Part shown: positions 39,909 to 64,000 of the stretch, in pieces
Numbering within the stretch: position 1 is the first letter of the stretch
How the letters are laid out: each line of letters begins with the position of its first letter
Origin: Bugula neritina
Taxonomy: Eukaryota; Animalia; Bryozoa
Length of the DNA: 64,000 bases
Assembly (NCBI GenBank): GCA_964035545.1
Contig: OZ037770.1
Span: forward strand, 5,590,729-5,654,728
Reading direction: 5' to 3'
Notes under the pieces: model-generated
Seen by the model: the letters and a program-made list of their open reading frames with translations, nothing else
What the model was told of the DNA's origin: nothing
The model's database searches: none
Translations under genes and position numbers: made by a program

Positions 39909-42900
39909 TTAGTCATCTGTATTATTATTTGGGGTACCAATATTTTCTGGTGTGTTTAGGTCACTATAATCTGAGTTAACAGATATGCTCTCTGGTGAAA
40001 AATCACTCATGTTATCTAGATCAGTCAAACTTTCATCTAGATATTGTGGAGGCAACGCTTCTGCAATGGCGTCCTGGAGACTGAAGCCTACAGTTTTAAA
40101 TGGCTCTCTTTCATCAACAAAACTTCTCAGGACATCTTGTTGTGTGTTGAGGCACCTGTAGAAGTCATCTAAGCAGTAATCAGCTTCATTTTCTCTTAGG
40201 GTCTCTGGAAACTCCTGGGAAAGAAGGAGGTTTTCTTGTGCTAATATTTCGTTCAAATCCGTCAAGTCTTGGGTCAAAGGGTCCTGACATAAAGATTCAC
40301 CTACAGAGCCTTGTTGAAAAACATTTGGTTGTATTTGTTGATTTGGATGACTGATTGTTCTTGGTTGGACTGTAATAGAGCTTTGACTGCCATATGCTCC
40401 GCTAAAAGGTGTTGCTCCAAAACTTCGAAGTCTAAATTTCAGTTTGCTTATTTCCAGTTGTTGCTGAGGGGTAAGAGTTTGATGACCAGTCTGAAATGCA
40501 TTGCTGCTACTGACGCTCTTTCTTACCAAAGTTTGTGATTGCAATTTATATGGATGAGACTTTCTTCCTATGAAAGTGCCTTGGCTAACTGGGTTTAGAA
40601 TATGTATTGAACTAAGATGTTTCAATGCCTCAGAAGCCAAATAAAACCCTAAATATGTGCTTTTCATATCTGTTATACTAACTGGAGCTGTTTGAGTCAT
40701 TTGTGCAGATGAAAAAGTGTGTGCTTCTTGAACTTCTTCTTGCTGTCCTAATTCAAGTTGGGTTTCCAGGTTTGAGCTTTGGGTAAGCAAAGTTTCAATG
40801 GGTGGAAGCTAAACAACAACATGATAAATTGAAGATTCTGTTATGTAACTAGTAAAACAATATTTCTACAGTCAGACCTATTGCAAGTGGGTAAAACTCC
40901 ATAATTGACCAGTGATAAACTTTGTCTAACTATACTAACTAGCAATGTATATAATGTGCCACAACAAATTTCTATAGGTCATGGGTTAACACATAGCAAT
41001 GGGTAGTCTTTCTTGAGTAGCTTCACTCTAAGAATCAAAATAATTTAATGTGTTAGACACTGGTACAAGTTAAACCCTGTGCTACAGATATGCTGCACTT
41101 ACCGAAATTGTATGAGCCCCTAATGCAGATGAAGAGGTTTGTGTTTCTTCCTGTCCAGAATTAGATTGAGCTTCTGATCTTGAACATTGGATAAGTAAAC
41201 TTACAATAGTTGGAAACTGAAAAGAGCACAATAAGATGAAGATTTTACAATGCAGTTGCAGCAAAAAATAAGAAAACTAAATTCTTGCTGGTGGAAACTG
41301 CAGTGTTGAAGTTGTAACTAGAGCTATTTTTCAAGATGAGTTTAGTCGAGCAGTTTTGACGGTTGATTTACACAAAATTTCACAACTAATAGAGTTGATA
41401 GGAACATCTAAATACTCACAAGTAGTTAAATAAAATTTTTAAAATGACCAGAATTGTTTTTAGCTTAGTTTATAAGTTTTGTGTAATAAATGTTTGCTAT
41501 TCTATTTTAACACTCTTATGCCATCACCGACTTACCATAAAACTAATAAATTCTGAAACTGTACATAATATTAAAAAGTCATTAATGGCAAGAGTTATTA
41601 ACTTTACTGTTTTTGTGCAGAGAAAAATGCTCATAAAAGATTTTAGACATCATGGGTACAAACTAAAGTCAGTACTACAGATATATGTTAAACTGACTAC
41701 AGTAGTCTGAGTCGTCAGTGCTGCAGATGGAGAAGTTAGTGTTCCATAAACTTGTTCTTGCTCTCCTGATCCAGGTTGGGTTTCTGGGTTTGAGATTTGG
41801 GTGAGCAAAGTTTCAACGGGTGGAAGCTAACAGAAAAACAGAAGCAAATAAAAATTTTCTAGTGCAACTATAATACATTGCAGTACATAAGTTTTTGTTA
41901 TATTAGTAAAACCAGCTTTGAACACCCAATAGTACAATTAGATACATTTTATATTAACTTTAATTAAATAATTTTTCAGTGTGGAATAGCTTCAACACTT
42001 CCACACTGAAATCCAAAGTCTTTTTATTGTTTTTATAGACACTGTGAAGAGCTCAAAAAATCAGTACTACAGATATGTTACACCAACTGGAGTTGTATGA
42101 GCCCTCTGTGCAGATAGAGAAGTTAGTGTTCCATGAACTTGTTCTTGCCATGCTGGTGCAGGTTGAATCTCTGAGTTTGAGCTTTGGGTAAGCAAACTCA
42201 CAATAGCTGGAAACTGAAAAAAGACAAGAGATGGTTATATGAACAGATAATTCTAGAGGAGTCATGCTGTAAGCTCTATTTTTAAGTCAAAATTGGTAAG
42301 AATTCAAGTTCATGTTTTCCTTAACATAATGATGATACTGTTTAGTTTGATAGAATTAGATTCGACAAAACTCGCTATTTTACTGTCAAAAAAATTATAT
42401 CATCTTCATTGTTGGTGGCAGCACTATATTTTTCCTATAATTTTTTTCAAGCAAAAGTTTCCATCAGCGAATTTTGTCATGGCAAAGTTACCTGTTGATT
42501 TGTCTGACTTGTGTTTTGCACGTAGGAGGAAGGGAAACTGTGACTTGTTGTGGCTTTGACAGTACCGTTTCCATCACTGGTCAGTGTCTGAAATTTTGTC
42601 AATTTGATTCAAATATATATAAATATATTTTCCGACAATAAAGCTCAACAAATTAAATTATTTTGATATAACAAGCCCTAGATTATTTTTCTAAAATTAG
42701 AAATCAAATTTCTGTTTAAAAAAAATTACATACTTCACTACTAACAGAAATATCTATGCTACAAATTACTTTTATTGTACCTACACATGAAGAGTGTATA
42801 TAATATACCTGTCGGGATGTTTCCACGACCAGATCAGCACCTGGAGTTGCCCACTTTTTACCTGCAGAATTAGCCTGCCTCTTGGCAAACCCCTCGCCAA

Positions 42901-45480
42901 AGTGATCCTTCAAGAAACACATTGCACATCATTTCATTAGGTCTGCTTAACATAATATTATACAATGTTAGGATAAACAGTTTTGCTTCAGATTTGAGTA
43001 CTCAGAATTCATAATTTTATTTAAAAATATATAACTCTTTGAAGCATAATTGCCACACACATAAATATTGTACCAAGTAAAAACCAAGCTTTATGAAAGT
43101 AAATTGTCACACAGCAAAAATTCAAAGTGACAAAGCATCGATACCTCAAAAAGGCAAGTCTAGACTACTAACACAAATAGTTTGTAACTTTTGTATAGCT
43201 ACTCACCCAATTCCAACTGCCTCTGTTACCGTCTAAATTAGATGCGGCCGTCTGGAAAATCTCCACGAAAAGGTCAAGTGCTGTTGCTCTGCTTTCTAAA
43301 TCTCTAACTCGATCAGCAACCCTTTGTAAAAGATCTCGAACCAACTGCAGATACTGTTGACAGGAAGTAAACCAATATGCTTAATAGATACTAATTTTGT
43401 GTATCAATGCATTGTTAGAAAAATGTGTCAATAAGAGTCAGCAAATCATAGGTCAAGTTGAGACATTCGGCAAATAACAAATTGAAGGATGCATGAAACA
43501 CTGCAAGCTGTTTATAGTAAAAGCCAATTTGTGAAATGGAAAATGCTTTTACTTGATAGATTCATGAGTACTTTCAAACTGCTTTACATTGCACTCATGT
43601 TTTGAAATCTAAATTTATAAATAAATAGGCAATGTAAGCAGACTGTTAAACTAGATGCGATTGCACTTGAAGTTTATATTTTAGTTGATAATTTTCTCAT
43701 ACTTCATCAAAATAAGTTCAAATATTCTCATATAGAATGCTGTAGACAATTCTAGTTAATCACAAGCAATATGAAGCAAATATCTTTTTAAATCTTAAGT
43801 GATAAGCAGCCTTGTCACTAATGGTGACTGCGAATGATACAAAACGTATGTAGATATGATAAATATGATGTGGAACTAACTCTGCACAGGCTTTTCCAAG
43901 GGATTGAATTGTTGGCTTTACGCAGTTCTTCACTTTCAGGCCTTGCATTCAGCCACTGTATTACTTGGCCATTTGCCAAGTCTAACCGCGGCAATGAAGA
44001 GCCACTGTCCAGCAATGAGACTGATAAATTGAAAGGTGAAGTTGAGAAGCAAAGGGTATATTTCAAAGTTGGAATAACATTCTCTTGGTAGCTCATGTAC
44101 ACATACTCCTACACACATTTAGAAAAAGAGTCACCTTTACAGGTGTAAACCTACGCTCAAAAGTAAATACCTAAACTTATTAAACAATATAAACTGCAGT
44201 TAATAGCAGGCAGTTGAAATTTTTATCAAAATTTAGGTGACTAAACAAATGACTTCTGAATTGGGCTAAAACTTACTCACATTGAGGAAAAACTGCAACT
44301 GTGCTTCTGTATGTCAACTAACAATCACACTTCTTAGAACTAATAGCTGTTTTAATTTTTTTAATAACAAAAATATAACTGTATTGTTTTATAATTGTAT
44401 TACCATTGTACTACCAAGGTGTCAAGAATTTAATGGCTAAAATGACAAGTATAGTGAGGTATATATAACATTACGTACTGGCTCTTTCTATTCGATCCGT
44501 TATATGTTTGTATTGGCGAACACGAGCTATGTTGGTGTAACTAAACGTACTCTCTGGAACCTGATTGGCTAAGAACTGGTTTCCCAGATGTCCATCAAGA
44601 ATGGAGACTCTGTAAGACAGAATGAGCAGATCAGCGCATGATTGGATGAGCATGCTTCATTAATCACAGCTGTAAACTAACAGCTAATAATATATATCTA
44701 ACATGCAACTGAGTTTTTTTAGTTTCTCGAACTAAAATTGGTTTAAAGACTTGGCAAATTGTGAAGATATGCATTAGGTTTCACATTAGTTTTGAATAAA
44801 TGACGAGCCTGCTTTTTGATACAGCTTTTCCAACTAAACAATGTGCACTCATCCAAGAAGAGTTACTAAGTCCTTATGTTTCAGTTAGGCTGTGAATATT
44901 ATTTATTTAGTACCCAATATTGGGGGCCAACTCAGACTCGTACCTATTTTTATGACCAAATATAGCTTAAGAAAACTCACACTTCAATGACAGTGAGAAG
45001 AAGGATATCTTCAGAGGTTGGAGGCTTGTTTCTGTCAATAAGCTCCTGCTCCTTAAAACTTGCATCTTGAGACTAAAATAAATGATGATGATTAATACTT
45101 ATAGGAAAGCATATATTTGATCAATAAATAGAAGTAATTTTTTCAGCTTGAAAACATTTCCACTCAGATGGTTTGTCACCAACAATTATTTTAGTAGTAG
45201 AGGAATTAAAACAGCATTTAGTTCTAGATGTCATATGTAGCAAAGGGCTTCTATCCTACACCCCAATAAAAATGTTTAACATGAAATTAGAAAACATGGA
45301 CAGATGAAAGGCTTTTGTTACTCCATATCTAAAAGTGACACATGTAAATGTCACAAAATTCATTGTAAAATATAACAATTTGATCATGATGACAAACACA
45401 ACTTTAAAACTAAGTAAGGCAGCAAAACATTCCCCACATAAAAACTATCAATTAATAGATTATAAATAAATTTTTACCAT
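39909..45480 (-). CDS. Paralogue B of an unrecognised tandem gene family (N-terminal 'WxW' domain + low-complexity tail)
   Basis: Exons: ATG 45480-45478|gt, 45072-44981 (92 nt), 44609-44479 (131), 44020-43881 (140), 43353-43207 (147), 42907-42809, 42587-42492, 42213-42088, 41826-41698, 41216-41103, 40808-39909 (terminal). Phases are compatible. N-terminus MSQDASFKEQ...DILLLTVIE...VIQWLNARPE...YLQLVRDLLQRV...LFVEIFQTAASNLDGNRGSWNW. Confidence 0.8.
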
Positions 45481-46256
45481 TTTTCTTCAGATCAGCACCT
45501 TTTAGCATCAGAAGTCGGTTCTCTTTTAAAATAATGATAATTTTTCCTCTAAAATAGCTTTCTAACAAACTCTGCTTTAAGCTACCATTCTTGTCAGCTT
45601 TTTGTAATTATAGCTTAGAAAAATTATTTTGCAAATGTTTGGTATCTTTTATTTTTACAGCTTTACAGATAAAAAAGCTTGGCTCTATCAAAAGTATAAT
45701 ATACTACTTTTAATAAATGTACTACCTAAGCAGTTTGAAACAGTTGATTAAAGTATAACAGTATTGCTTCAACATGATACCATTTATGTTTGTCTATTTT
45801 TTCTATTACTCACATTTAAATTGTCCTATATGCCATTAGAAGGGAAAAGCTAAAACCAATTATGTGTAGTAAATCAGGTGGCTGCTATACTGCTAATACT
45901 AGCATATAGTACTTGGTACCATCTAAAGTCACTTCAGTATGCATGATTATTGGTGCTCACATTGAAATAAACTTTAATTTTAAAAACTTTTTTGCAGCTT
46001 TAAAAATTTTTGTAATTTGTAAAACAAAGTTTCACATCACTAAAAAGTAAAATCAATCTTATTATAAAAGTGCAAAGAACTTTTGTTTTCTCTAATTTTT
46101 ATGGAAAACACATTTCAAACAAAATTTAATATCTAACTAATTTTATCTGTCTGTAATTGTTTTTGTTTTATAATTGTTCTATACTAAACTGAATTATGCT
46201 TATAATTTTCCCTTAATGGCCTTGCATGCATTTTTGGGTAGATAAATATATAAACA

Positions 46257-46461
46257 ACTCACGCAAGTTTATTGTAGATGCTATACATGTGAGAAACACC
46301 CGATAGAAAGGGTTTATGTTAAAGTGGGCTAAGGAATTATTTAAATGAGAAGCAAGAGCAATTATAACTGGATTCTATTTCTAACATCACCAATGGCCTT
46401 TGTTCGGGCACTACCTCCTGTTTACTAAGCAAACCCTTTAACCCTCTAAACCCTCTGCTCC
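46257..46461 (-). mobile_element. tRNA-derived SINE, same family (diverged)
   Basis: actcacgcaagtttat...ctaacatcaccaatgg...ctgctcc, colinear with the other copies. Confidence 0.8.
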
Positions 46462-47009
46462 TTTTAGATAAATACACAAGGTGATATTTTAATTTCTAAA
46501 AGGACTAGATAAAAATTTAATGATGCATCTTTGTTTGAGATAGCAAAGCTACTGATCTCTAAACAGAAAACTCAGCAAATTAAAGAGTAGCTGAAAACTG
46601 CCGCTTTTGATGTATTCTCAAGTATTATGATCATCTTACAAACTATTATATAACAAAACTGGTTAAATAGTTTGAAAGATAGAATTTTCTAAACTCCTTT
46701 AAAAGAATTAATATTTTTATGGGAACTGCTAAGCTTATTTTGAAATTAATTGGACATTTTTTTGTACAAATGAACAGAAGCTGTTAGAGTATGCAGTAAA
46801 CAATAACAACATAAAACTGAATGTAAATAATTTTTACTAAAAGCTATTTATTTTAAACTATTGATAACATTTTATACACAAATAAACCTGCTACTCTTTT
46901 TTAAAAGTTTTTGAACATAAGTTAGATGTCACAAAAGTGTAAAATTTATCATACAAAAGCATGCAGATCGCTGCAATTATTATGATATTTCTTTGGGACA
47001 GAAAGTCTA

Positions 47010-49138
47010 CTAATAATGCTGGCTGTCTTCTGGCACCTGTTCCTCTGAACTGTCAGAATCTTGCAACTCTCCAAATGGCTGACTGACTGTTGGTGGCCTG
47101 AATGATGGCTCTGAAGTTTGGACAACACTAGGATGCTGTTCGGGTAGTTGCTGGTAGAGTTGTCTTGCTGGCAGGGTCTGTAAAGGACCGACTACTTGTG
47201 CAGAGGTTTGAAGCCCTGGGCGAGCTTGCCTGTAGGATAAATCTGCCCCTATATTTGGTAACATCCTTCTGTTGGTATATCTTTGCTGTGGATTTACTTC
47301 TGCTAGAGCCTCTGGTTGATAAAGCTGGTTTGGAGGTATTTGGTATAAGTTATCATTGTTTTCTCTACGTTGCAGATTGCCATGTCTGGTATCTACTATT
47401 GATTGAATATCTGAGAAAGGTGCTGGTCTTGTGGGTTCGAAGGCTGAAAGATATTGCTGTGTGGTTGGTTGCTCAGACATATATATGTTGGCAACAGGAC
47501 AATAAACATTTAACCTTCTGTCACTTTGTGCATGAGGCATTTGCTGTTGAGGGAGAAATACTGGTCGCTCTTCTTGTTGATGTATTTGCCTCTCTGGCAT
47601 GTGCCTGTAAGGTGGTTGCCTCTCTGACATGTGTGTGTAAAGTGGTTGCCTCTCTGACATCTGTGTGTAAGGTGACTGCCTCTCTGGCATGTGCCTGCAA
47701 GGTGGTTGCCTCCTTGACATGTTTGTGTAAGGTGATGGCATCTCTGACACGTGTGTGTAAGGTGATTGCCTCTCTACCATGTGTGTGTAAGGTGGTTGCC
47801 CCTCTGACACGTGTGTGGAAGGTGGTTGTCTCTCTGACATGTGTGTGTAAAGTGGTTGCCTCTCTGACATGTGTGTGTAAGGTGATTGCCTCTCTGGCAT
47901 GTGCCTGTAAGGTGGTTGCCCCTCTGACATGTTTGTGAAAGGTGGTGGCATCTCTGACATGTGTGTGTAAGGTGGTTGCCTCTCTGACATGTGTGTGTAA
48001 GGTGGTTGCCTCTCTGACATGTTTGTGAAAGGTGGTGGCATCTCTAACATGTGTGTGTAAGATGGTTGCCTCTCTGACATGTTTGTGAAAGGTGGTGGCA
48101 TCTCTGACATGTGTGTGTAAGGTGGTTGCCTCTCTGACATGTGTGTGTAAGGTGGTTGCCTCTCTGACATGTGTGTGTAAGGTGGTTGCCTCTCTGACAT
48201 GTTTGTGAAAGGTGGTGGCATCTCTAACATGTGTGTGTAAGATGGTTGCCTCTCTGACATGTGTGTGTAAGGTGGTTGCCTCTCTAACATGTGTGTGTAA
48301 GGTGGTTGCCCTTCTGACACGTGTGTGCGAGATGGTTGGTTTCCTGACAAATGGGAATATGGAAAATCAAACCTCTGTGTCTGGGGTATACTTTGCTCAC
48401 CTCGATTATATTCCATCCGATAATGATTAGGCTTACCAGGAGTCTGAAAAATATACATTAAAAATTGAATTTTAAAATTTAATATATAAAATTGAAAAAG
48501 GGGCAGAAATTGATATTTAAATTTGCTTACCGATATTTATAAAGACATGTGCTACCACTATATCTGCAATTGGTTGATTTTAATGTGACTCATTATTACT
48601 TTTGTTGGGTGAGACCAAGTACTAAATAATTTCTTGTAAAACTTATTAGTTAAATAAAACAAAAACAAATGCAATCAAAAAATATCCCAAAAATAGTTCT
48701 CAAGAAAAGATTTACTTACTCTGATGATAAAAACGTTTCTTATTGAAACCAGAATCTAATTTAAATATTGATACTATATAAACTTAATTGAGCTAAAGTC
48801 AACTTATTATGCCACCTAGTTGAAGGTTTTCACTTGAAATTAGACTTAATATAATTGTCTGTTTCCTTGAAACATAAATGTTGATTCCTAACACAAGTGT
48901 ATATAAATAGTTTAAGCAAAGATCATGTGGTAATCACCTGTGCTGCCTTCTTCTTTTTAGTCTTCCTATATTCTTTTTGCTGATCCTTAGTAAGAAAACC
49001 CTTCAATGATTGTATTGAAAATATTACTCAAATAATGCAGTCAACTTTACTACTCTGAAGATGGGTACAGTGGTACCCGAAATATCAGTGTAATTACTTT
49101 ACCTAATAAAGTAATAAATAACAATGTTTCTCGTATAC

Positions 49139-49177
<39 letters not shown>

Positions 49178-49178
49178 C

Positions 49179-49222
<44 letters not shown>

Positions 49223-52200
49223 TGTGTATATATATATGTATATATGTATATGTATATATATATGTATATATATATTTATATTTACATAATATGATGATAT
49301 AAAATATATATAAGCTAATTATTTAAATAATTTATTTACTTTTCTGACATTACCTTTCTTTTGGAAAATTTTCTAGTTTCCTGAATTTTCTCAGTATTCC
49401 TTGGAATTGCCTTCACTTCATCAGATGTAACAATCTATATATATGCAATACATTTTATAGTATATGTATACCAAATATAAAAAGAATACAATATATATTA
49501 TTATTATATATAAACAATGCATATATACATTATGTCTGTACATATTATATACATAATTAGGTTGGATATATATTATCTATTGTTTTGTATTGGAAGTTCC
49601 TTGCAAAGAGTTTTGGATTTTGGGACTTTTGTTAGCGTTGTTTGGAGTTTTCTTTCCTCCATCAGATGCAAGATGCTGATTATACAAGTAACACGCACAT
49701 TTAAGCATTTTTGCTTATAAAAGCTGTAAAAATTCTACCTAATCAGTCAAACAACTAAAATGTGTGAATAACTCATATGGAACATTTGCAACTTACACAG
49801 TCATCTTGCTGTTTAGATTCGGGTGACAAAGTAACCCTTTCTACTTCATTATCATCTTCCTGGTGGGGTATCTTTATTCTTAAAACATAGGAAGTGCTTG
49901 GCCGCTGCAAATAAAGAAAATTTGCTCGTATAAAGGTACTTGTAGTTGCTATGAAATAGGAGTGTGATTTTAGTTAATGCAAGCTCTGCACATTAAGTTC
50001 CGTTAAAATTCTGTTTAGCTCAAAATCTCTACTCTACTAATAATCTCTGACTGCAATAGTTTTTTAAGACTAAGTATACTGTTTAAGGGCTATACTTTAG
50101 CAAGCTGTGTAGGTTGATTTTGGTTTAACCTATAATAAATCAAAGTCGGTTTTAAAACTTCTGGTTCATGAAGTTTGAAAAAACATTATCAAACTTATTT
50201 CTAATTTGAAACAGCATAAGTAGAAATACTAAACTGTGACTTAGATATTCAGAGCAGTTGAATTTAGGTACTTTGTAACAATATCAAGTAAATAATATGC
50301 TAGCACCAAGAAGCTGTGCAGTAGAGCAGCCCACAGAACAGTATGTGAAAGTCACTACCACAATTTACAACTTGCTTTTAGGTAAGCATTGCAGTTATAA
50401 AATACAAACAACCAGCTCAATTAAAGTGTAATATATTTTAACTGCAATTAAACCAGCATATCTTTGGGTTTTCAAAGTGTGTCTTTTTAAAATATTGTTG
50501 ACATGTATTTGATAGTAATTACCATTGCCTTTTGTTCTAGTTTCTGAGTTAGAGATGCTTGTCTAGCTTCTTCAATACCCTGCGAAGTTTTCACCTTTTT
50601 ATCAGCTGTGGTGTTCTATTTGAACAGAAATAACTTATCTCAATATCTTTAGACAAATCACCGGTTACTGTCTAGTGTGCATGCATTTCATTATAAGCTA
50701 AACTTTGGAATGAAAAGTAATGACTTAAGGAGAGATATTGACCATAAATGTTACATTAAGGGTTTTCATCAAAAGAGCATGATCAAGGGAACTTTTAAAT
50801 CGACAATAAAATTGCATATTTTTTCACAAAAAAACTTTTTTTCTTAAGATTAGTAGACATAAAGTTTGATTTCACAGACCACTCAGAATGCACTAACCAA
50901 TTACACCACAGAGGCTACTAGGTACACGCACCACTACACTTATCTTAATTTTTCAAGAGGATTTTGATGTATTATCTATTTATAAAGTATATTATTGTTT
51001 AATAGTAAAAAAACAAGGCCATGGAAATGAAGCTGCTTTTTACAGCTTTATAGAGCTTTTGATAAAGCTGACATTGCCTGCAGCATTGGATTACTCACAC
51101 ACTCTACTTCCTGTTGAAGAGAATCTTCTGGTACAGCAATCAATTGATTCTCTTTTTTGTCTCCTCCTGGTTGTTCTGGTTGCAAGAGAGTGACAAGGTT
51201 TGGAAACTGAAAATAAAAACATGCAAAAACTTCGTGACCAATAGCATTTTCAATATAGCTTATGTGCTTAGCTCCTATGCATATTTAATGATAATGAAAG
51301 AACAAATGTTATCAGTGTAATTTAACTTTTAAAAATATTCTTAGCTTTGTCAGCTATGTTTCCAAGTGTTTACTTATACATTCAGGTATTGGAAACTAGC
51401 TTATACTGGTAAAATATGTATAGCCAAAATTGATAAAAAATTAATAATGTACTATAACTTGATAAAAATATTTCTTTAGTGCAAAATCTACCCAACACTC
51501 AAAATAAGCTGCAGGTCAAAAGTAATAATTTTTTGAATAAATGAGGTAAAAGCAACACCATTTACAATCCGCTAATTTTTACAATCTTTAAATTTTATGT
51601 CTGCTGAAGTGACAGTCAAATATTGTTTACTTCTAATTTTGCAATTTCCACAATTTGAAGTTTCTTATATCTCTATAACTACTAATTCACAAGACATAAC
51701 ATGTATATATAGCATGGTGGGACGTTATACCAATGCTAACTAAACTGTTTTATTCATTGCTAAAACGTAACGCTCCATGACTAATGGTGAATAGTCAGCA
51801 TAGCTGTATAGCTGTATTACCTGCTCTGCTGTTTGAAAAGTTCTCTGTTTAGGATCTGCAACTTGAGATGGTGACTCATCACTTGTAACTTCAAAAGGGC
51901 TGTTTGTGACTTCAGAGGAACTGGTGGTGATTTCAGAGAGAGTGGTTGTGACTTCAGGGGGGCTGTTTGTGACTTCAGAGGAACTGGTGGTGATTTCAGA
52001 GAGAGTGGTTGTGACTTCAGGGGGGCTGTTTGGGACTTCAGGGGGGCTGTTTGTGACATCAGAGGGGCTGGTTGTGACATCAGAGGGGCTGGTTGTGACA
52101 TCAGAGGGGCTGGTTGTGACTTCAGGGGGGCTGGTTGTGACATCAGAGGAAGTGGTTGTGATTTTAGAGGAACTGGTTGTGACATCAGAGGGGCTGCTTG

Positions 52201-55200
52201 TGACTTCTGGGGGGCTGTTTGTGACTTCAGAGGAGCTGGTTGTGACATCAGAGGAGCTGGTTGTGACTTCATCAGCAGAAACACTCTAAAATCCAGCAGA
52301 CTAGTAGTTAAAGCAAAGTGGTTTAAAGAAGTACTCTCACTACATCCCCCTGGGTTCGTTTATCCTCAAAGACATCATCCTATCATGACATCCCATTAGA
52401 TTTAATAGCTATTTCAAAATTGTAATTAAGTAGTGAAAAGTTCAGCATAAAGCTAGCGACAAAGCTGCATGATCTGCTAAAACCCAAAACCAATGGATTG
52501 CTAATATTATAGTCATTGTCACTCTTTATCTTCAAATTTGAGAAATCTCTCACTCACGCAAGTTTATAGTCGCTATCCCTGTGAGAAACCCCTGATGGAA
52601 AGGGTTTTTGTTAGAACGGGCTAAGGACATGTTCAAATGAGGCACAGGAGCAATTATGACTGGATGCTCTTCCTAACATCACCAATGGTCTTTGTCGGGG
52701 CTTGAACCCACAACTTCGTGCTCACAAAGCGGACGCTCTAACCCCTAGACCACGGCTGCTCCCTACCCTGCCTAATTTTTTCCAAGTTTTATGTGCCATT
52801 TAGTTATGTTGTATTATTACTGCATATATTCACTCACACGCTGTGTTCCGTCCTGCTGTTCAATAGCATCAGGTGAAAATGTTACTAGCACCTCTTCACA
52901 TCCTTGTGACTCAAGTAGCAGAAAGGAGCCGATGCCTGGAAGCTGGAAAATGACCGAATAAAAGTTTATCCTCTAAACAGCTATAATCTATACAAACTGA
53001 TCTTTAGCTAGTCAAGTAAAAACTTTATATTTTGACATAACAATAAGTTTTGCTATAAATCTCATATATGACTTGACCACCACTTTTGAGAAAATTTCTA
53101 TAGATTTGAGGTGATGATTGACATAGGCACATAGCATATTTACATTTGAAGCTGGAAGTTACTTCACAGAAATCTAATTAAAACTAGTAAAAATTCTACT
53201 ACCTATAACAAATTTTACCATTTTTTTAACTGTCTGGATTTGCTAAACTATGTGCAGGGCTCTTTAGCTATAAAAACTTAAACAATAATTATTAAAATAG
53301 ATAAAAAATTTTGCACCTTTTGCACTGTTTGTAAGGTTTGTTGTTCAGAGACCTGAGCTGTTTGGTCACATGATTCACTATTCTCTAAAGTTATATCCAC
53401 TTCACCAGCTGAGACATTCTAAATATATGCAAACAAAACCTTCATCTACAGATCTTTTTTTGTAATTCTAATACTAAGTTACAACATTTCCCCCTACAGC
53501 TCTAAGTAAAGTTTTTCATTAATAACATGAAACTCACCTGCCCTGCGTCAGACTGCTGGCCAGAGTCAGCTGATGGGACAATCAGCTCCGCCTCTTCATC
53601 ACGTGCTGTCTGCTGCGACAATACATAAAAAATGTCAACTATTTTCACCAAAAGCAGTAATTTTAAACTAATACCAATAATTCAAAATTAAGCATAAACC
53701 AATAAACTATTATGAACTTAACAGTAAAACATGAACTATAAAAAGAAAAGCTTTAATAATTGTTTCATTCATCAAACTTTTGCATTGCTGTTAAATGTGA
53801 TAGCTTTTAAGATAAAAACTTTTAAAAAGATGTTAAAAAGCAATTGCACACTAAATTTGATTTTAATTATTTTTCAATAAAAAAAAAAAATTGTAGGTAA
53901 TTACAGCAACAGGAAAATTGGCACTTTATTTATAACATTTATGTTGTCGCTACTCTATAGTAATAACCATGAGATGCCCACACAAAGTACCTGAGGCTCT
54001 GGAATAACATCAAGTTCCTTCTCATCACAGCTGCTTTGTAATGGTTCTAATTGTGGAGGGGAGGTGACAACACTCTGGTGCTAAAATAGAGAAAATAATA
54101 ATGCTAATATGATTGAGTTTCACAATAATTAAAAAAATGCAACATTTTAACTAAAATATCAATTATAAAAGTATTTAGTCCAAAGTTTTTCAAATAAATG
54201 ATGAATACATGACACATGCAAAGTAATAATAACTTTTATTGCCCAACATGCTGCTTTAGAGTTGTCTTCTCTTTATCTCACGTGTTTAATAATTACCCAC
54301 AATGCATTATATTACTTTGCTTTATACCTGCTAACCAGCCTTGTTTATATGTAAAATAGAAATGCCAAAATAAAACCATAGATTCTATAATGGGTGATTT
54401 TTATCAGAGTTGTCATGCAAAAATAATCAAAGAAATGCGTAACTAAAACGACATTCTGCAAGCAGGTTGAAAGAAGCAAAATTACTTTAATTAATCACAT
54501 TACCTGCTTTGCCGTCTGAAAATTTCTCTGTTCAGAATTTTCAATTTGGGACGGTGATTCATCTGTCTCAGTTTCACTTAAGCTGGTTGGGTTTTCTGTA
54601 GCAGCAACACTCTGAAATACAGGAAAATACTACAATTATTTATTATATGAAACACAACCCTGCTGTAAAATAATTACCCTTACCAAATTCAAAAATGAAA
54701 CTTTTAAATTTTTTCTATATGAGGCTCTGAGCTGGGGATGAATGAGTTCAGTATTGTGAGTTCTCAAATTTGAAGTTAAAGGTCTAATTTTAAACTATTG
54801 CACTCAGTCACTCCAACTCAAAGCTGCTTATAGAACAATTTAAACTTTCAATTTTCAAGCCAGTGTTCCTCCCAATACACAATGGGAGGGAGGGGGGGGG
54901 GCTAAAAGAATATATCAACACTAGATTTAACTTAGTTCTCTAAAGCTACACTAACTCTGTCAATTCTTAAACTTCACTGGTTCTTCATGTCCCTAAGAGT
55001 AGTGTAACACTACACCCATGGCCAAACAGTTTGTAGAGAATGCTGCCAGCAGCGGAATCGAGACTAAACCACAGTGTTTCAACTTGCAAGCTAGCTACTT
55101 ATTACCCTACAGGGCTGTAATTCAATGTTTAACTCTATTTACTGTATAATATTCACTCACAAGCTGTGTTTTATCCTGCTGTTGAATAGAGTCAGAGGAG

Positions 55201-58200
55201 AGATTTACTTCCTGTTCCTCCTCATCACATCTCTGTTGTAATGAATCAGGTGACAGAAAGGGGTTGATGCCTGGAAGCTGGATAATGACCAAACAACAGT
55301 TTAACTTTTCAACAGCTACAATCTATTGTAGTGTTGTGTTTCCCCCAATAGCCTCCGTGGTGTAATGGTAGCACACTTGCTTGCAAGCCAGAAGACTCAG
55401 GTTCCATTCCATGCCACCACTGGGAATCGAATCCGAGTCTTCTGGCTTGCAAGCAAGTTTGCTACCATTATACCACGGAGGCCACTGAGTAAACTCAACA
55501 CTACATCTCTTTTCCACTGAAATGGTTTTGAGTTGAAAACATAACTTCATGTTTTTGTAGCACCAATAAGCTATTTTTGTTTTACACCATTTTAAAAATC
55601 CCTTACATAACAGCTAAAATATGTAAAGCACTTCTAAGACACTTTAGCTAAGAATTCATATAAAGCAACTAAATTTCCGTGGAACAGAAAAATGTAACTT
55701 AAAAACAGATTAACAAAACTTTTGAAAGCAATTACTATTTAATAGAGTTTGTCATGTTTATGGTATTTAAGTGAACTCTGACAATGAAATAGCTGAATTA
55801 AATGGGTGGAGCTACATGCATTACAAAGAAGTTACCAAAAATTTTGAACATTTTTTTCAGCTTACCTTTTGCACTGTTTGTACGGTTTGTTGTTCAGAGG
55901 GCTGAAGTGTTTGATCACATGATTCAGTATTCTCTGGATTTATCTCCACTTCACCATGTGAGACATTCTAAATAATATAAACAAAACTTCCATCAACAGA
56001 TCTGTGCTTAGCAATAGAAAGTAGCAAGAACTGCCACCTACTCTGTTTGCATGTGGAGTTGAATCTGTTCAAAATTGGCTATATGAGTCACTCACTATTT
56101 CATGGTGTTTTCCAAATTAATTTAAAGAAGCTTAACTTATGAAAAAAACATAATGCTCACTTTAAATTGCAATTTCGTAATATTTGAGTGTTTAGTGTTC
56201 TCTCTACTCACAGATTGAATGTTGCCTTGATATTGATTTGAGCTAACTAATTTTATCAAAATTTTTTTCTCGGATGTAGACTTTAGCTATAAAAAGCCAA
56301 CATTCAATTTAAGCAAAAAACAGCAAAAAATTATAGCTTTGTAACTAATGCATACTGTGTACATGTATTTGAGTTGGATAGAAAAATGTTAACTTGCTAT
56401 TCTTAGGATCAAGTTACAATCGATTGTCTCTAAATTGACACCTGAATACTCACACACAGTGTCTCAACTTCTGACTGAGGTAGATCAGATGGTAAAGTCA
56501 TTGACTGTTTCCCCTCATTATCATTTGATTGAAATACTTCTGGTTGCAAGGCAGTAAGGCTGCTTGGTGGCTAAAAACCGATAATCTAACTTTAAACATT
56601 ATCGCAGCTAAAGGATCCATCATATTCTTGTTGAAATAACTATCTAAGAATATTTTTTACTAGATAAATGGTAATTGTAAATTATTTTAGCTATTTTATT
56701 TCTGATGAATTTAAAAGTATTATAATTTTTTCCAGTAAATTTTGGTCTCTGGTGTTTTTAAAAACGCTCAGAATACCTTGTCTGTTGTTTGTGAAGTTCC
56801 CTGGTCCGCCATTATCATCTGAAAGGGCTGAACAGTTTCTCTTCTACTTCTTGATATCAATGTAACTTCAACGGAGGACAGACTCTGAATGAATAAAGAC
56901 AACCACAATTAAAGCTGGTTAAAGATAAGTTTGGTCAACTAAAGAGTCAAGACTGGTGTTATTATTGCCTATAGGCTCCTGTAACTTATAACCTCTGGTT
57001 CTTGAATGAATTCAGGTGACAGAGTAATTACTTCTGTTTCTTTGTCTCTTTGTTCAGGACTTAGTGGCAAGAGAGTGAAAATGCCAGGAAGCTAAAATTG
57101 AAAATACTTTGTTTATTTTCAGGTGAATATAAAACATTCATAAGTTCTATCTCATAGTGTGCAGCTATACATTAATATAAGTACAAAAGTTTGTCATATA
57201 ATTCTCAATGAAGCAGGTAAAGAGTGCACAAGGAAGAATTAAATACTGTGTGTAACAAAAGATAAAACAACTGAAACTTTCCTTCTTTTCTCACATAACA
57301 ATTTGACAAGTAGCCATATACTATGGAGTATATTATGTTGACCATTCAATCTAGCCAAGTTTACAAATTTGTACCAGGTCTAATAATTTACATACTGCAA
57401 TGTATATCTTATAATATTACTGATTGATCCGTTTGTGAAGATGTTTGCGATTGGTCAGACTTTTGTTGGTATATCAGTGAAAGGGTGTCTGATTTTTTTG
57501 CTTGAGAGGTAATTTGTGGTCTGATCTGTAAACTGGTCTGTGATTGGTCTCTTTCTTCATCAGGATTAACTATCTTGTGCGTTCGCTTACTCTCTTTAGC
57601 TCTTTCCGATTTTATGAAGGTATCATCATGGAAAACACTCTATATAAAATAGAAGACAACTTCTATAATTGTATGACATTACACAATAAAAAAGTGGTAA
57701 AAGAAAAAATTAACTAAACTTTATGCTCTGGAAAAAATTTAACAATGTTGCATTTTGCAAGAATACTAGCTTCATGATATATATAAAGTGACTTGAATTT
57801 AATTAAATTTAATCAGCTGGTGAATATACTGTATTTTACATAAGCAACTGAACTCACACATATCTTAGCTATGTTTATAAAACTATGAAATACCAATCAT
57901 CTGGTTGGTTGTAAATATTATAGAAGTTTTGTAAATGTCTTATTGTTATATATATGGTAAAAACACTCAGCCAGCAGTAGTTGCTGGTACCTCACTGTGT
58001 AAAGATTTGTAGGAATTTAGAATAAGGTTATTTGAAAAACACTGATACCGATTGGTCCCCAATTGGTCTCCTAGTGGTCCCCCCTCAAACTGCATTTTAC
58101 CATGTGGCCCAAGTTATGAAACTTTTTATTTCAGTGACCCTCACTTTAAAAAAATTGGACACCACAGGAGATATAAATTTATTGAATAAATATTGTTATT

Positions 58201-60725
58201 TAACGAGCTTTGCATTCAATGTATTACAATATGTCATGGGTGACTTCAATTAAAAAAATAATTAAATTTCAGCTATCACGTCAAAAAATTCTAGCAATGC
58301 ATTGTGATGATGAGCTCACCCAGTCCCAGGCTACTCTGTAACCTCCCGCATTATCAAAGTTTCTTGCTGCAGCCCTAAACACTTCAGTGAAAAGAGTTAC
58401 CACTTCCTCTTCATTTTCTTCTGTCACTTCTATCTGGGCAATTCTGTCTAAGAGAGCTTTGGTCAGACTCAAATACTGAAAGATAGAATATTAGGATAAA
58501 CCTTTAATAACATAGTGTGCAAATAGTGGCCATCCAGTATAGTTTTCTTTTGTTGGAACAGGTTTATCAGCCAACTCTCTTGGAAAATGGAACAGCAACT
58601 AATTGTTACCACAACTTGTAAGTAATAAATCTAACAGATGGTGATACAATGTAGCACTTTGTATTGTAATTACATGGTATAGCCATTATCTTCATAGAGC
58701 ATATCATTATGTACAAAATAATGAATGGTATTACAGATTATTTAAACAGGTTACAATTTAAATGTTTCTTTCAAGTTGGTACTTGTTTACTCTATTTTAC
58801 CTCTCAACATCATTTTCGTTTTCAGAAGAAATGTTTAAAGCTTTGTAATTATTGAGAAATTTTGACAGAATGAAAGTTGGCCAAATTAAAATAAAGTTTA
58901 ACAAAAAACAAGCAAAGTACTTGAGAGTTTATAAAAAAATTAGAAAATAATTTTCATGCTAGCAGCTTTTATAGTTACTTTTTGATTGTACTTCTCTTTA
59001 TGAAACAATAATAGCTTGTGTCCAGCAGTCTACTTGGTTCGAACTTTCATTAATAAGTTTTTATTTAATATCAACAAGTACCAAATTGGGTAATCTATAA
59101 TTGCTTTTTTTAAAGAAATATAAATTAAAACTGTGGTATCTTGTAAAGTTAGACCACATGCTCTTACCTCACAAACAGTTGCCTGTGAAATTATGATTGT
59201 CTGGTCTAGCAGGCTCATCGTCTCTGGACATCCATTCAGCCACTGAATCACAGTTTCCACTCCATCAAACAAGTTTAGTCCATTAAATGATGGCTGGCTT
59301 GGTAGAGTGGAAACTGAAAATATAATGTAATTTAACTAAGAGCATCCAGTCACAATTGCTTTTTCCTCTAACTTAAATAAGTGTTTATAGCCGGCTTTAA
59401 CAATAACCATTTCCATAAGGTGTTTTCTCACATGGACAGTGACTGTAAACTTTGATATGTTTTTTTAAGCAAATCCAATAATTAATTGTATATAAATAAA
59501 TAATACAAAACATCATAACTGTAACTATGATTATTCTGGTCTAAAAGTTTGAGTTCCTGTAACACAAATTTAATGAATTTAAATCTTGACTGTTTATGAT
59601 GTCATGTAACTGAAGCTGTTGTTTGATAAATGTCCAAAAAACCCTTGTGTCCAGCAATTAAATTGAGATAAACATTATTAGCTCAGTTGAAAGTGTTTGT
59701 CCTATTATACACACTTCCCAAAGGACAATTTGTGAAAAATTTACTCAAGTGGACCAGGTAAAAGGAAGAGGCTATACAACTGTGCAAACCATTAAAATAA
59801 CATCATCACTTCTGAGGGATGAAAGCAGTAAAATAAACTCAGTATTATTTATTAGACAGACTTCACTCAATTAAAGACCAGGCAATGCTATATATATATA
59901 CTCTACATACTGATTTCTTCGATACAGTCCACCAAGTGTCTGTGTCTCTCTGCTTCTGGTGTGATGCTTTGACTAAAGATATCTGCATGAGTAGGGCTGA
60001 TCCAGAGAGACGATCTTATGCTATGCTCAAGGTGGCCAATACTATAATTAACAGGTGTGTAATATTATAGTGCTTTATATATATAAATAAATATATATAT
60101 ATATATATATATACATATATATAGAAATACATATATATATAACTATAAAAATACACATATGTACTCTATGCTCTATACAATTATATACACGGTATGCACC
60201 TAGTACCTACACATGTATAATTATACACCCACCCACACACACCTGCACACTTACCTGTCCAGCACCAGCAGCAAGATGATGTCTGTAGCTGTAGCCTCAG
60301 AGTCAGAAGTTCCATCAAGAGTCGCTTTAAAGTAGGTTCCTTGTGACTGTATAAAGAATATAAAGTAAAGTTCCCATCTAATATAAAATACTAACATAAT
60401 AAGCTTTTTGTTATGATATAGCAGGGGTTATCTTCTCATATAACAAATACTACAACAGCATATGACAAGACTATATGCAGCATTATATAACAGATATTAT
60501 TATCATGCTTCAACATTATAATATTATATCAAGAAATATATTACATACTGTATTATGGTAGGTAATATACTAAGTATAATGGGACACATACTATGATGTG
60601 TATTTTGTTGCAGGAAAAACAATATAACATTATTTTCCAAAGAATATACTAGAATATAACTATAATACATTGATATATTTAATACTACAGTGCATTGGCT
60701 ACTAGTTATAGTAATGAGTTACCAT
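47010..60725 (-). CDS. Paralogue A of the same family, with a long array of symmetric exons and a repeat-rich terminal exon
   Basis: Exons: ATG 60725-60723|gt, 60346-60255 (92 nt), 60041-59911 (131), 59313-59168 (146), 58475-58320 (156). Then phase-0 exons 57639-57421, 57091-56993, 56884-56777, 56570-56454, 55967-55866, 55277-55161, 54611-54504, 54080-53991, 53612-53538, 53418-53317, 52942-52838, 52285-51821, 51206-51099, 50615-50523, 49904-49797, 49434-49354, 48985-48938, and terminal 48443-47010. N-terminus MSQGTYFK...DIILLLVLD...[10 protein letters not shown]...[12 protein letters not shown]...[14 protein letters not shown]...AWDW. Confidence 0.8.
47587..48340 (-). repeat. Coding 33-bp (11-aa) tandem repeat, consensus [10 protein letters not shown].
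   Basis: About 23 units of ggtggttgcctctctgacatgtgtgtgtaa-type sequence inside the terminal exon of paralogue A. Confidence 0.95.
49144..49280. repeat. Compound (TA)n/(TATG)n microsatellite
   Basis: Direct reading. Confidence 0.9.
49577..49675 (-). pseudogene. Decayed (pseudo)exon in the paralogue A exon array
   Basis: Has an acceptor and an open frame [12 protein letters not shown]...NTKQ, but ends TAG|ataat where sister exons end (C/A)AG|gtaat. Confidence 0.5.
51900..52270 (-). repeat. Coding 21-bp (7-aa) tandem repeat, mucin-like (E/D)VTTSPS
   Basis: Units of gaagtcacaaccagcccctct type within exon 52285-51821, read in the phase-0 frame. Confidence 0.9.
52551..52763 (-). mobile_element. 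tRNA-derived SINE (best-preserved copy)
   Basis: Head GGGAGCAGCCGTGGTCTAGGGGTTAGAGCG with A box, B box GGTTCAAGCCC, body GGTGATGTTAGGAAGAGCATCCAGTC, tail ...TATAAACTTGCGTGAGTGAG. Multiple copies in the window. Confidence 0.9.
54711..54838. mobile_element. Diverged copy of the 3203-3340 MITE
   Basis: gctctgagctggggatgaatgagttcagta...tgcactcagtcactccaactcaaagctgcttatagaacaa. Confidence 0.7.
55327..55505. mobile_element. Palindromic element composed of two inverted tRNA-like units, TG...CA termini, ~5-bp TSD
   Basis: tgtagtgttg...gcctccgtggtgtaatggtagca.acttgcttgcaagccagaagactc followed by its reverse complement ending caacactaca. Flanks tctat/tctct. Confidence 0.8.
59337..59453 (+). mobile_element. 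5'-truncated SINE, same family
   Basis: aagagcatccagtcacaattgct...tttctcacatggacagtgactgtaaactt. Confidence 0.7.
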
Positions 60726-61936
60726 GTTTTCTCCTTTAACTAAGACTTGACTCAATTAATCAGACTGATGTATCGCATCCCAAACTTGGTATAGACTAGC
60801 TCTAGGCAGCAGAGTCTGTATTGGAGTGAATATGCTGCTATAAGTGCAAGCTTTCTCAAAATAGAGTGAAAGCTTTTCCTAGGCTTTCCTCGGTATTTAA
60901 AGCATCTCTATTTATACTTCTGCACCAATTTTAAACTCTAATAAATAATAATAAAAAGTACTGCAGAAAGATGAGTTTAATTGTCTCCACCTACATCTTG
61001 ATGGGCTCACTTTGCTATGTTCTGTAGTATATACTAAATATAATATGTGTCTGTATATAGGTTATAATATATATTGCATAATGTATTACACTATATATAT
61101 ATTTTAGATGTGCCATGTAATATAATCTATATATACACCTTACATGTTATACTATATATGTATGTTTTGACTAATTGAGCACAGATCAATGTTTGATTCT
61201 ATTGTTTATTCAGGCCTGGCCTTATCATACCAGCAACAAACAATAACTAAAGTCAGCCCTACTGCAACATATTATAATACTTGTCTAATGGAGCTTCAGT
61301 TATATATTATGCTGATTAATTATACTATTAAAAGTAAGGCTGTAGTCCATGTAAAGCAGCCAAATGTGAAATAGCCAGCCAAACTTTACCAGCTTGATTC
61401 AGCTCAGTCTGTCAATTCTCTCAACATTATAATAATAAATGGTTTTGGTTCTGGGTTGATGGTAAGAGAATCAGTGGGGGAGGGGGTTTTGTTGCAGTTA
61501 TCAACTGCTTTTCCATACATACACTTACCTATCTGCATAAATATACTAACACTAAGTATATCTTTTGTCTCCTAAACCTTTGGTAAAGATTACTTGCACA
61601 TGGTTCATTTAGTTATGCTAAACTTTATTTTATTATGTAAATACAATCTAAAGCATTGGAAACTTACAAGTCAAAAAAGAAATTATAATTGTCATATTGA
61701 AAAACCTGGCTATTGATATATACATAATAATGGACTTCTATTGAACCCTGACAGATGAACAAAAAGTATTTAAAGTAGAAAACAGATGCATTTTTTATAT
61801 AGATAATTAAATTTATGCATATTGTTTAAAGTTATTAATGAGGTGGAGCAGAAATTGGAAGAATAATTTTGATTACTTAGTCAATTATCAAAAAACTCAA
61901 TGAAAAAACTTTTTTAACAAATGTACAGAAACTGTC

Positions 61937-64000
61937 TTAAATCAGGCCAATTTTTGGTAGATAAACTTCGAACTCTGAAGGATCCACGGTTCGTTCACGG
62001 AGGTCTACCAAGGCTTCATAAGTGGGGCCTAGATAATTTTGTAGTTCTCTCTCCAGAGGGTCTGCTGTAGCCTGTGCTGAAAGTGAACCTAAAGTTAAAA
62101 GTGGAATCGATGGCTCTATGATGTTTGGATCAGACCGGCCTGGTGGCTTGCTAGAGGTTAGAACTGGTCTCCAAGAGCTCAGAGGTGGTAGCACTGTTTG
62201 AGCAGGCTGCACACTCATAACTCGTTGATCAAAGGCTAATGGGTTATAGCCATTTGTCACTGTCTGTTGCAGCTGATATGGAGAAGGTTCCGTCTTGACT
62301 TGTGATGAAAGATCACTCATGTTACCTTCAAGATTCCTGGAGTTCTTTGAACTCCGAACTTGCTGAAGTCTTCCTTCTGTACTTTCAAGAGATTGCAGCT
62401 GTTGATTTGGCAGACCAGGTGATGGTGAAGAGCGTGCCAGATAGAATGGGCTTGACTCCACTAAACTAGCATTTTCTGGTTTCTGTAAGAGGATCACTTA
62501 AGTTTACACTTCATACCATCTTATTTATTGAGAATGTTATCTTTTCAGCAATAAAAGTTTCGCAGATGGTAAAATTTAAAACACAGAATAACTCTTTTAG
62601 CTGTGATACTTTGCCCAGTCAAGCCAGATATAATTTTATAGAAAATCATTTAAATTCTTTTTGGAATTTTATGAAAATGTGTCTGACAGAAACTATTTTC
62701 AAACATGCTTATATAGTTAACAAACTGTGAGATTGTTGAAATCGATTAGAACATATCTATGCTTTAAATGTTCACAGAAAAAGTAATTTTGCCTGTTTTT
62801 CCTGTTACACATATTGGTAACGTAATGTTTTTAAATCTGTTTTCTAATGACACCAAAAAATAAAATAGCGTTGCATACATTCAGGGTACTTGACATTTGG
62901 TGACTGACTTTTTGGAAGGACTTGAACATGTTGCTGAGTCGAAGAGACGAGCCATCCTTTGGGGTAGGCAGATTTATTATTTTTGCCACATTACCACTCT
63001 TGAACATATTCTACAAGTATCACAAACTTCTTTTAAAAGCACTCATCATAAAATGGAATAATTTTACAAAGTTACAGAAGTTGCTATAATTTTAGTTGAA
63101 GCTTTATACAAATTCAACTTTTTTTTGCACTGCTGCAGAATGTCTTAGCTGCAGGTTAAACATGCAGTAGATAATTTTCAATCGTCTTTAAAATGTTTTG
63201 CTAAACTTATTACTTTAACACAAAATCCTTCAAATCACTAACAATATATTTTAGTGAATACTTGTAATATGGTAATATCCTTAATGCTGGACACTAGAGA
63301 TAGGTTGCAAATAATATTTTTATGCCCTTTAAAAATTGAGTGATTAAATCAAACAACCTCTTTTCAAACTGATGAAACAAATACAGCAATCTAATTGTAA
63401 TAAAATTTCATATTACTTACCCAGTTCCATGAAGACTGATAGCCATGGGTTTGATCTAATGTCTTGACAGCATGTTCAAATACATGGCAGTAGAAATCGT
63501 ACCTTTTGGAGTCATCCCAGCCATTTGCTGCCTGACAGCAGACTCTGTGCAGCACCTCTTTCATAAGCGCTAGATACTAGCAAATATACAAGCAAATTTA
63601 GCACACAGGAAAAATAATTTCCCTCTCCCCTGTAGTGATAAGTTTACCCAGTTGTCCTCGCCATGTAATTGTTATCACACTTGTAATGCAACAGTTTTAT
63701 CTTTCGCACAAAACTCAAACTGAAACAATTATCTGGACAGTAAAGTTTAAGTTACCTGCATCTTTACCAAAAAAAAAACTTGAGTTATACTGACTCAAAA
63801 ACTACCAATAAAAGCTATTGCAAAGACTTTTTTGGAAAGATTTCATCACACAATACTTTTACTAAAGCTACAACACAAATTTCCTGCAACAATGATTACC
63901 ATAAGTTGGCTGAAATAAAGTTGAACTCACAGCACACACTGGAAGAAATGGGTATGACTCTTTACACTCCCTTAGTGCGAGATATTGGGGCTGAACAGTG
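61937..64000 (-). CDS. Paralogue C of the same family (5' part beyond the window end)
   Basis: Exons >64000-63931 (...QPQYLALRECKESYPFLPVCA), 63576-63421 (156 nt, YLALMKEVLHRVC...VFEHAVKTLDQTHGYQSSWNW), 63010-62879, and terminal 62482-61937 (KPENASL...LPKIGLI*). Confidence 0.78.

Follow-up and report, generated by a model that had tools for sequence, protein, structure and literature searches.

Three tandem bryozoan genes joining a conserved N-terminal head to fast-changing tails in a 64-kb stretch of Bugula neritina DNA

The stretch of DNA analysed here (the window) comprises 64,000 nucleotides (nt) assigned to Bugula neritina (GenBank assembly GCA_964035545.1, contig OZ037770.1, positions 5,590,729 to 5,654,728 of the forward strand), and its right-hand part holds three spliced genes on the minus strand, named A (60725-47010), B (45480-39909) and C (from beyond the window end to 61937). 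Each joins an N-terminal region of about 170 residues, called the head, to a downstream tail; the head is spread over four short exons (e2 to e5), which follow a coding start consisting of a single ATG, the last triplet of exon 1 in both A and B. The GC content of the window is 28-40%. A, B and C are genuine protein-coding genes that arose by tandem duplication in a bryozoan, and their exons are collected in Table 1.

The gene models were built from genomic sequence, and exon bounds, lengths and phases were recomputed by reading AG acceptors and GT donors. The exon architecture proposed in the initial annotation was recovered in full: AG and GT flank every exon that had been named, the phases are identical among the genes, and in all three a W-x-W ends exactly at a phase-0 splice donor. 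The motifs that had been listed for the head (DI.LL.V, VIQWLN..PE, LF.E[IV]F..AA.N[LF]D, and [LV]C. followed by YL.L) are likewise all present. Identity between A and B, compared exon by exon on the translations, is 33% in e2, 16% in e3, 39% in e4 and 41% in e5, and that between A and C is 27% in e5. Chance similarity was assessed by a tblastn-type search of the entire window translated in six frames. Matches of e5 were obtained at E=9e-8 for A/B and at E=5e-6 for A/C and B/C, and e4 of A and B matched at E=2e-3; for e2 the A/B match was the best non-self match, with E=0.9, and e3 gave no significant match by itself. The similarity of e5 and e4 thus lies beyond chance, as expected for the three same-strand paralogues with a common architecture that had been described. 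No fourth copy of the head was found in the window by this search.

Orthologues of all three genes were found in related sequence, where the family is syntenic. Window positions 34-64 kb align collinearly with three stretches (L005, L006 and L010) of scaffold VXIV02002487.1 from B. neritina, at approximately 78-88% nucleotide identity, introns and intergenic DNA included. Since B. neritina reads differ from this scaffold by only about 2%, the window represents a close relative or cryptic sibling species of the scaffold's source and not the same population. For gene B, the ATG with its GT donor and exons e2 to e5 lie at L005 4315-6621, with all splice sites kept and no indel, while the introns contain 1236 gap columns. 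For gene C, whose head is cut by the window end, the complete set of head exons is present in L010: e2 at 7989-8077 (89 nt), e3 at 8329-8435 (107 nt), e4 at 8836-8981 (146 nt) and e5 at 9989-10144 (156 nt), with AG/GT throughout and the phases of A and B. The sole ATGGT[AG] in the 3 kb upstream, at 6967, is an ATG followed by GTAAGT in a purine-rich context like that of the A and B starts. Because e4 and e2 of C in L010 carry equivalent motifs (V-L-H-W in place of VIQWLN in e4 and D-I-L-L in e2), together with the full exon set in the same phases, the whole head is common to A, B and C.

The A locus of the scaffold is different. Exons e2 to e5 of A are missing from VXIV02002487.1, in which about 270 bp of (TA)n (L006 690-955) replaces the 2.6 kb that holds them in the window. 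They are present on a metagenome contig of the Joint Genome Institute (JGI), L001, whose match to the window extends across exons and introns alike and which rejoins L006 at the TA run; the gap most likely arose when the assembly collapsed between two runs of TA. A second, more diverged A-like head (e3 to e6) occurs in the same samples (L002 1-2655 and L003 1-1219); it is 62-72% identical to window A in amino acids (aa), and around e6 its nucleotide identity to L006 is only 76%. Either it is a fourth family member, an additional copy, or it is a haplotype that has diverged very far. One or more further A-like members probably exist in B. neritina.

When the last exons of B and C were used in word searches, clusters holding the B. 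neritina proteins KAF6025184.1 and KAF6025181.1 were retrieved. KAF6025181.1 (EB796_016492, 229 aa), KAF6025184.1 (EB796_016495, 177 aa) and a pair of unnamed models of 192 and 285 aa that lie between the two are the orthologues of C, B and A. Their order and orientation on VXIV02002487.1 match those of the window genes, and their tail exons are 74-80% identical in amino acids to those of the window, but all four are fragmentary, are devoid of e2 to e4 of any head, and have been assigned no function or domain. The heads had been said to escape the lists of open reading frames (ORFs); this is correct, and they also escape the published B. neritina annotation, in which only tail ORFs and most of C e5 are found. 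The W-N-W donor of C e5 is used in KAF6025181.1, whereas C e6 is skipped there and is possibly a cassette exon. The published models were made by AUGUSTUS with transcriptome hints (PMC7576161). A chromosome-level B. neritina assembly with Ensembl annotation exists (PMC11480708), and that annotation may already model these genes.

Selection was evaluated from the ratio of nonsynonymous to synonymous substitution rates (dN/dS), using Nei-Gojobori counts summed exon by exon against the B. neritina loci, with a Fisher test for B. The head of B has a dN/dS of 0.17 (dS 0.26; Fisher p=7e-8), compared with 0.60 in its tail; that of C, covering part of e4 together with e5, has 0.12 (p=3e-4), compared with 0.53. 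For A, the value is 0.39 against L001 (p=0.008), and 0.81 in a subset of seven tail exons, which is not significant. The tails have changed also in their exon content: e7 of B, an in-frame exon of 96 nt, has no counterpart in the scaffold, where approximately 190 bp is missing, and e9 of B is partly different there. Because substitution ratios and exon changes agree, the arrangement of a constrained head on fast-changing tails is upheld, B and C giving the clearest case. The initial annotation had proposed conserved heads on freely evolving tails and had named a dN/dS near 1 as the contrary outcome; the heads proved to be under purifying selection, with tails that change much more rapidly, through substitutions, indels and lost exons.

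These numbers bear also on whether the gene models could be artefacts or decaying pseudogenes, namely chance open segments in duplicated non-coding DNA. The models do rest on genomic sequence, the tail ratios of 0.53-0.81 are not low, and with a background nucleotide identity of about 83% conservation by itself is weak evidence. Head ratios far below 1, with p down to 7e-8, are not expected of such segments, nor is the complete lack of indels in any head exon as against hundreds of gap columns in the introns. Splice sites and the ATG-GT junction are kept at every comparable head exon (all of B, e5 of C, and the starts of A and B), and all tail exons are open and in phase. We therefore regard this explanation as barely tenable.

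The initial annotation had taken the tails to be unrelated low-complexity regions, and for A and B this was not borne out. The motif [FL]P.[ILV]..[LF]L, built around a hydrophobic-x-x-L-L core, is found at eight places on the minus strand, each time directly after an AG acceptor and at the start of four exons per gene (Table 1), and has no other occurrence on either strand of the 64-kb window. The same eight motif exons are kept in the B. neritina scaffold. Eight of eight occurrences at acceptors and none elsewhere is not a chance distribution, and on this ground the tails of A and B descend from a common phase-0 exon module; the C tail is without it. The tails range from about 225 to well over 1000 residues and are long and hydrophilic, with 24-29% hydrophobic residues and acidic or polar ends. 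They are probably disordered, judging from their content of disorder-promoting residues (66-69%, compared with 45-59% in the heads). The exon of 21-nt repeats in A (51821-52285) is open in two minus frames and one plus frame; the ORF list shows a frame reading SQPAPLK, whereas the frame set by acceptor and donor is rich in S, T, E, V and P. An internal segmental duplication of an exon block was also observed in the A tail (52826-52991 against 55133-55327, and 53281-53418 against 55863-56020), seen as secondary blastn matches and near-identical exon translations.

Known domains in the head were searched for with single exon translations of 23-52 aa as queries. In an hmmscan against Pfam-A of 10 head exons of the window, 7 head exons of B. 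neritina and 2 tail exons of the window, no family reached its gathering cut-off. The only matches were DUF7104 (E=1.4) and, on e4 of B only, bDLD3 (E 0.12/0.054; 12.8/13.9 bits against a cut-off of 27.1). Tail ORFs and the database proteins P0011 and P0005 had no Pfam match, and Rfam gave none over the whole window. A sequence-profile search of the PDB with alignments of e3, e4 and e5 returned matches of chance level only, such as 11 residues of the IQGAP1 CH domain and TPR-like designs. Likenesses to the STAT N-domain and to SAM, IRF and CH domains were considered, found no profile support and were dropped. The AlphaFold2 model of e5, from an alignment of seven exon sequences, consists of two helices with a predicted local distance difference test score (pLDDT) of 77, lending moderate support, for this exon, to the all-helical head that had been proposed. 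Foldseek found no match in the PDB below E=2.5 for this hairpin of 52 residues, a size at which such a result is uninformative.

Word searches gave only Bugula sequences, among them, with e5, one ORF fragment of 68 aa, and two scans of JGI metagenomes with the e5 and e4 alignments gave pattern matches of which none was confirmed. The e5 profile, run against 1.84 billion cluster representatives, retrieved a single additional Bugula fragment; its other two matches were false, one to a repeat protein and one to an ankyrin protein sharing LLDRV. This profile has 52 positions and needs about 40 bits or more for E<=0.001, and relatives may hide behind cluster representatives. It missed KAF6025181.1, although 48 residues of C e5 lie in that protein, since the representative of its 90% cluster has no e5, and presumably neither has that of its 50% cluster, the level at which the search works. 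With so short a profile and relatives hidden in this way, the absence of relatives outside Bugula is weak evidence. No described counterpart of the family was found, and in searches with its single exons the head had no match among catalogued families.

Two views of the head's origin have to be considered. The head may be a strongly diverged form of a known helical domain or fold, such as a Bcl-2-like bundle, a death fold or another helical bundle. The low sensitivity of such short queries leaves room for this, as do the relative overlooked by the large e5 search and the faint bDLD3 match. In Bcl-2 genes, an intron splits BH2 directly after its Trp. The head is of similar size and probably helical, its phase-0 intron after the conserved Trp, followed by x-x-F, recalls this BH2 position, and LF.DG...W in A e4 recalls BH1. 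Against it, exons of A and C have no match to a Bcl-2 or death-domain Pfam model at E<=10 (PF00452 included), and no Bcl-2-family chain is among the PDB profile matches at E<=10. Where Bcl-2 proteins carry NWGR (BH1) and W..GGW (BH2), the alignments show VIQWLN in e4 and G-x(3-6)-W-x-W in e5; NWGR is absent, as is a C-terminal membrane anchor, the motif spacing is not that of Bcl-2, and a Foldseek match of the 52-residue e5 hairpin to MCL-1 at E=6 is meaningless; for the death fold, the single match is confined to one gene and lies far below the cut-off. A diverged known fold is hence a possibility of some substance, though the odds are against it. Still more doubtful is the bolder view that the head is a new domain of no known fold, confined to bryozoans or Bugulidae, which nucleates a multivalent family grown by duplication of a phase-0 exon with the [FL]P-x-hydrophobic-x-x-L-L motif; this would be a scaffold system specific to one clade, having arisen and expanded inside a single phylum.

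As a working model we favour an intracellular multivalent scaffold or co-regulator, which by analogy is the most likely nature of the family. The head would supply a fixed interaction, either self-association or targeting, and the tail would supply valency by presenting a short docking motif many times over, between acidic and Q/S/T/P-rich spacers. The tails consist of phase-0 exon modules and change rapidly through substitution, repeat expansion, and gain or loss of exons. Taken as one reading with the gene-family model, we give this a probability of roughly 0.55. It is favoured because the head is compact and mostly hydrophobic-cored whereas the tails are hydrophilic, because the tail motifs are of docking type, and because no signal peptide is evident by eye at the N-termini. 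The last point bears also on secreted or structural low-complexity proteins of an adhesive or matrix, which the repetitive, P/S/T/Q-rich tails with rapidly evolving repeats might suggest. The conserved N-termini begin with M-S-Q and polar residues, without the hydrophobic core of a signal peptide, and the constrained part is the N-terminal helical domain rather than the repeats, so that proteins of this kind are highly improbable here.

The general design of the favoured intracellular scaffold or co-regulator is a familiar one. Epsin and AP180 adaptors likewise combine a folded helical head with a tail of repeated short motifs, but no ENTH, ANTH or VHS match was found on any exon, and the tails here carry motifs unlike DPW, NPF or the clathrin box. 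Co-regulators with multiple LxxLL motifs (p160/SRC and RIP140) and acidic activation domains with a hydrophobic-x-x-hydrophobic-hydrophobic motif call to mind the long, probably disordered tails of the family, rich in Q, S and acidic residues, and their several hydrophobic-x-x-L-L cores (IVSLL, IETLL, IFTLL and LVTLL). They differ from it in that no head exon matches HLH or PAS, so that bHLH-PAS is lacking, and in that the motif here has a fixed [FL]P, always starts an exon, and has I, V or L, not strictly L, in the first position of its core; a role in transcription would follow from this likeness by analogy.

Several points weigh against the scaffold or co-regulator model and the gene models on which it is built. 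The head of A is weakly constrained, with a dN/dS of 0.67 against L002 that is not significant. The AlphaFold2 helical model of e4 is unreliable (pLDDT 52) and lends the proposal of an all-helical head no support in this exon. The motif pattern was defined after these exons had been viewed. The sole independent model using one of the junctions is an AUGUSTUS prediction with transcriptome hints, which may be ab initio, and the models of the window rest on DNA. Any nuclear localisation signal and any binding partner are putative, and function is assigned by analogy.

This is a real but modest family, probably restricted to its lineage. Bryozoa is among the least annotated animal phyla, and three to four genes here have a conserved part that the published gene set of B. 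neritina lacks and that, for A, the assembly itself lacks as well, so that the family escapes protein databases entirely. If the head is a new fold, it would provide a clade-specific domain and would clearly illustrate how tails grow when exon modules are duplicated; if it is a diverged known fold, the family would still be instructive in that a conserved domain is joined to fast-evolving multivalent tails. The practical value lies in a corrected annotation and a testable motif, and there is no bearing on any long-standing open question.

Table 1. Exons of genes A, B and C in the window, with splice sites read and correspondence to related loci
Feature	Position	Strand	Observation
A start codon, last 3 bases of exon 1	60723-60725	minus	ATG then GTAACT; context and donor kept at L006 268-270
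A head e2, 92 nt, ends phase 2	60255-60346	minus	AG/GT; 33% identity to B e2, DI.LL.V kept
A head e3, 131 nt	59911-60041	minus	AG/GT; orthologue L001 348-476, 84% aa identity, no indel
A head e4, 146 nt, VIQWLN..PE	59168-59313	minus	AG/GT; aa identity 94% to L001, 39% to B e4
A head e5, 156 nt, ends W-D-W at GT donor	58320-58475	minus	tblastn against B e5 E=9e-8
A e6, 219 nt, phase 0-0, basic/acidic linker after head	57421-57639	minus	AG/GT, open frame; present on L006, L002
A tail motif exon 1, begins LPGIFTLL	56993-57091	minus	AG/GT; motif directly after AG acceptor; orthologous exon in L006
A tail motif exon 2, begins LPGINPFL	55161-55277	minus	AG/GT; motif at acceptor; kept in B. neritina scaffold
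A tail motif exon 3, begins LPGIGSFL	52838-52942	minus	AG/GT; motif at acceptor; kept in B. neritina scaffold
A repeat exon, 465 nt, phase 0-0, 21-nt repeats	51821-52285	minus	AG acceptor and GT donor read; end parallels exon starting near 54629
A tail motif exon 4, begins FPNLVTLL	51099-51206	minus	AG/GT; motif at acceptor; kept in B. neritina scaffold
A last exon with stop codon, 30-nt repeats x25, P/Q/S/E-rich	47010-48443	minus	Acceptor read, ORF, tandem repeat; collinear with L005/L006
B start codon, last 3 bases of exon 1	45478-45480	minus	ATG then GTAAAA; ATG and donor kept at L005 4315-4317
B head e2, 92 nt	44981-45072	minus	L005 4719-4810, AG/GT kept, no indel
B head e3, 131 nt	44479-44609	minus	L005 5153-5283, 93% aa identity
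B head e4, 140 nt	43881-44020	minus	L005 5744-5883, 93% aa identity
B head e5, 147 nt, ends W-N-W at donor	43207-43353	minus	L005 6475-6621, 90% aa identity
B tail e6, e7, e8	42907-42809, 42587-42492, 42213-42082	minus	Boundaries read and checked; e8 starts with motif
B tail e9, e10, e11 (with stop)	41826-41701, 41216-41103, 40808-39909	minus	Each starts with motif
C head e4, partial, cut by window end	63931-64000 (read as 63999-63931)	minus	Full 146-nt exon at L010 8836-8981
C head e5, 156 nt, ends W-N-W at donor	63421-63576	minus	94% aa identity to L010 9989-10144
C e6, 132 nt, phase 0-0	62879-63010	minus	AG/GT kept in L010, one in-frame 3-nt indel
C last exon with stop	61937-62482	minus	Orthologues P0010, P0011

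Other features lie in the remaining part of the window. A SHANK-like gene occupies positions 1-20800 on the minus strand, with an SPN-type N-terminal exon (18653-18868), ankyrin exons (about 14120-17799), SH3 exons (11294-11581 and 6797-7021) and a Pro/Ser-rich ORF of 223 aa (1490-2161), all recognised by eye. Its introns contain minisatellites at 13500-14158 (21 bp x31), 16976-17616 (29 bp x22) and 5320-5522 (22 bp x9). An intact ORF of 967 aa from a non-LTR (long terminal repeat) retrotransposon is found at 31462-34365 on the plus strand and encodes an endonuclease/exonuclease/phosphatase domain and RVT_1 (E=3.5e-33). A single-exon ORF of 680 aa without a Pfam match (36883-38925, plus strand) is convergent with gene B; its counterpart, an annotated gene of 688 aa at L005 11273-13339, has about 88% nucleotide identity and is the best-conserved stretch of the locus.

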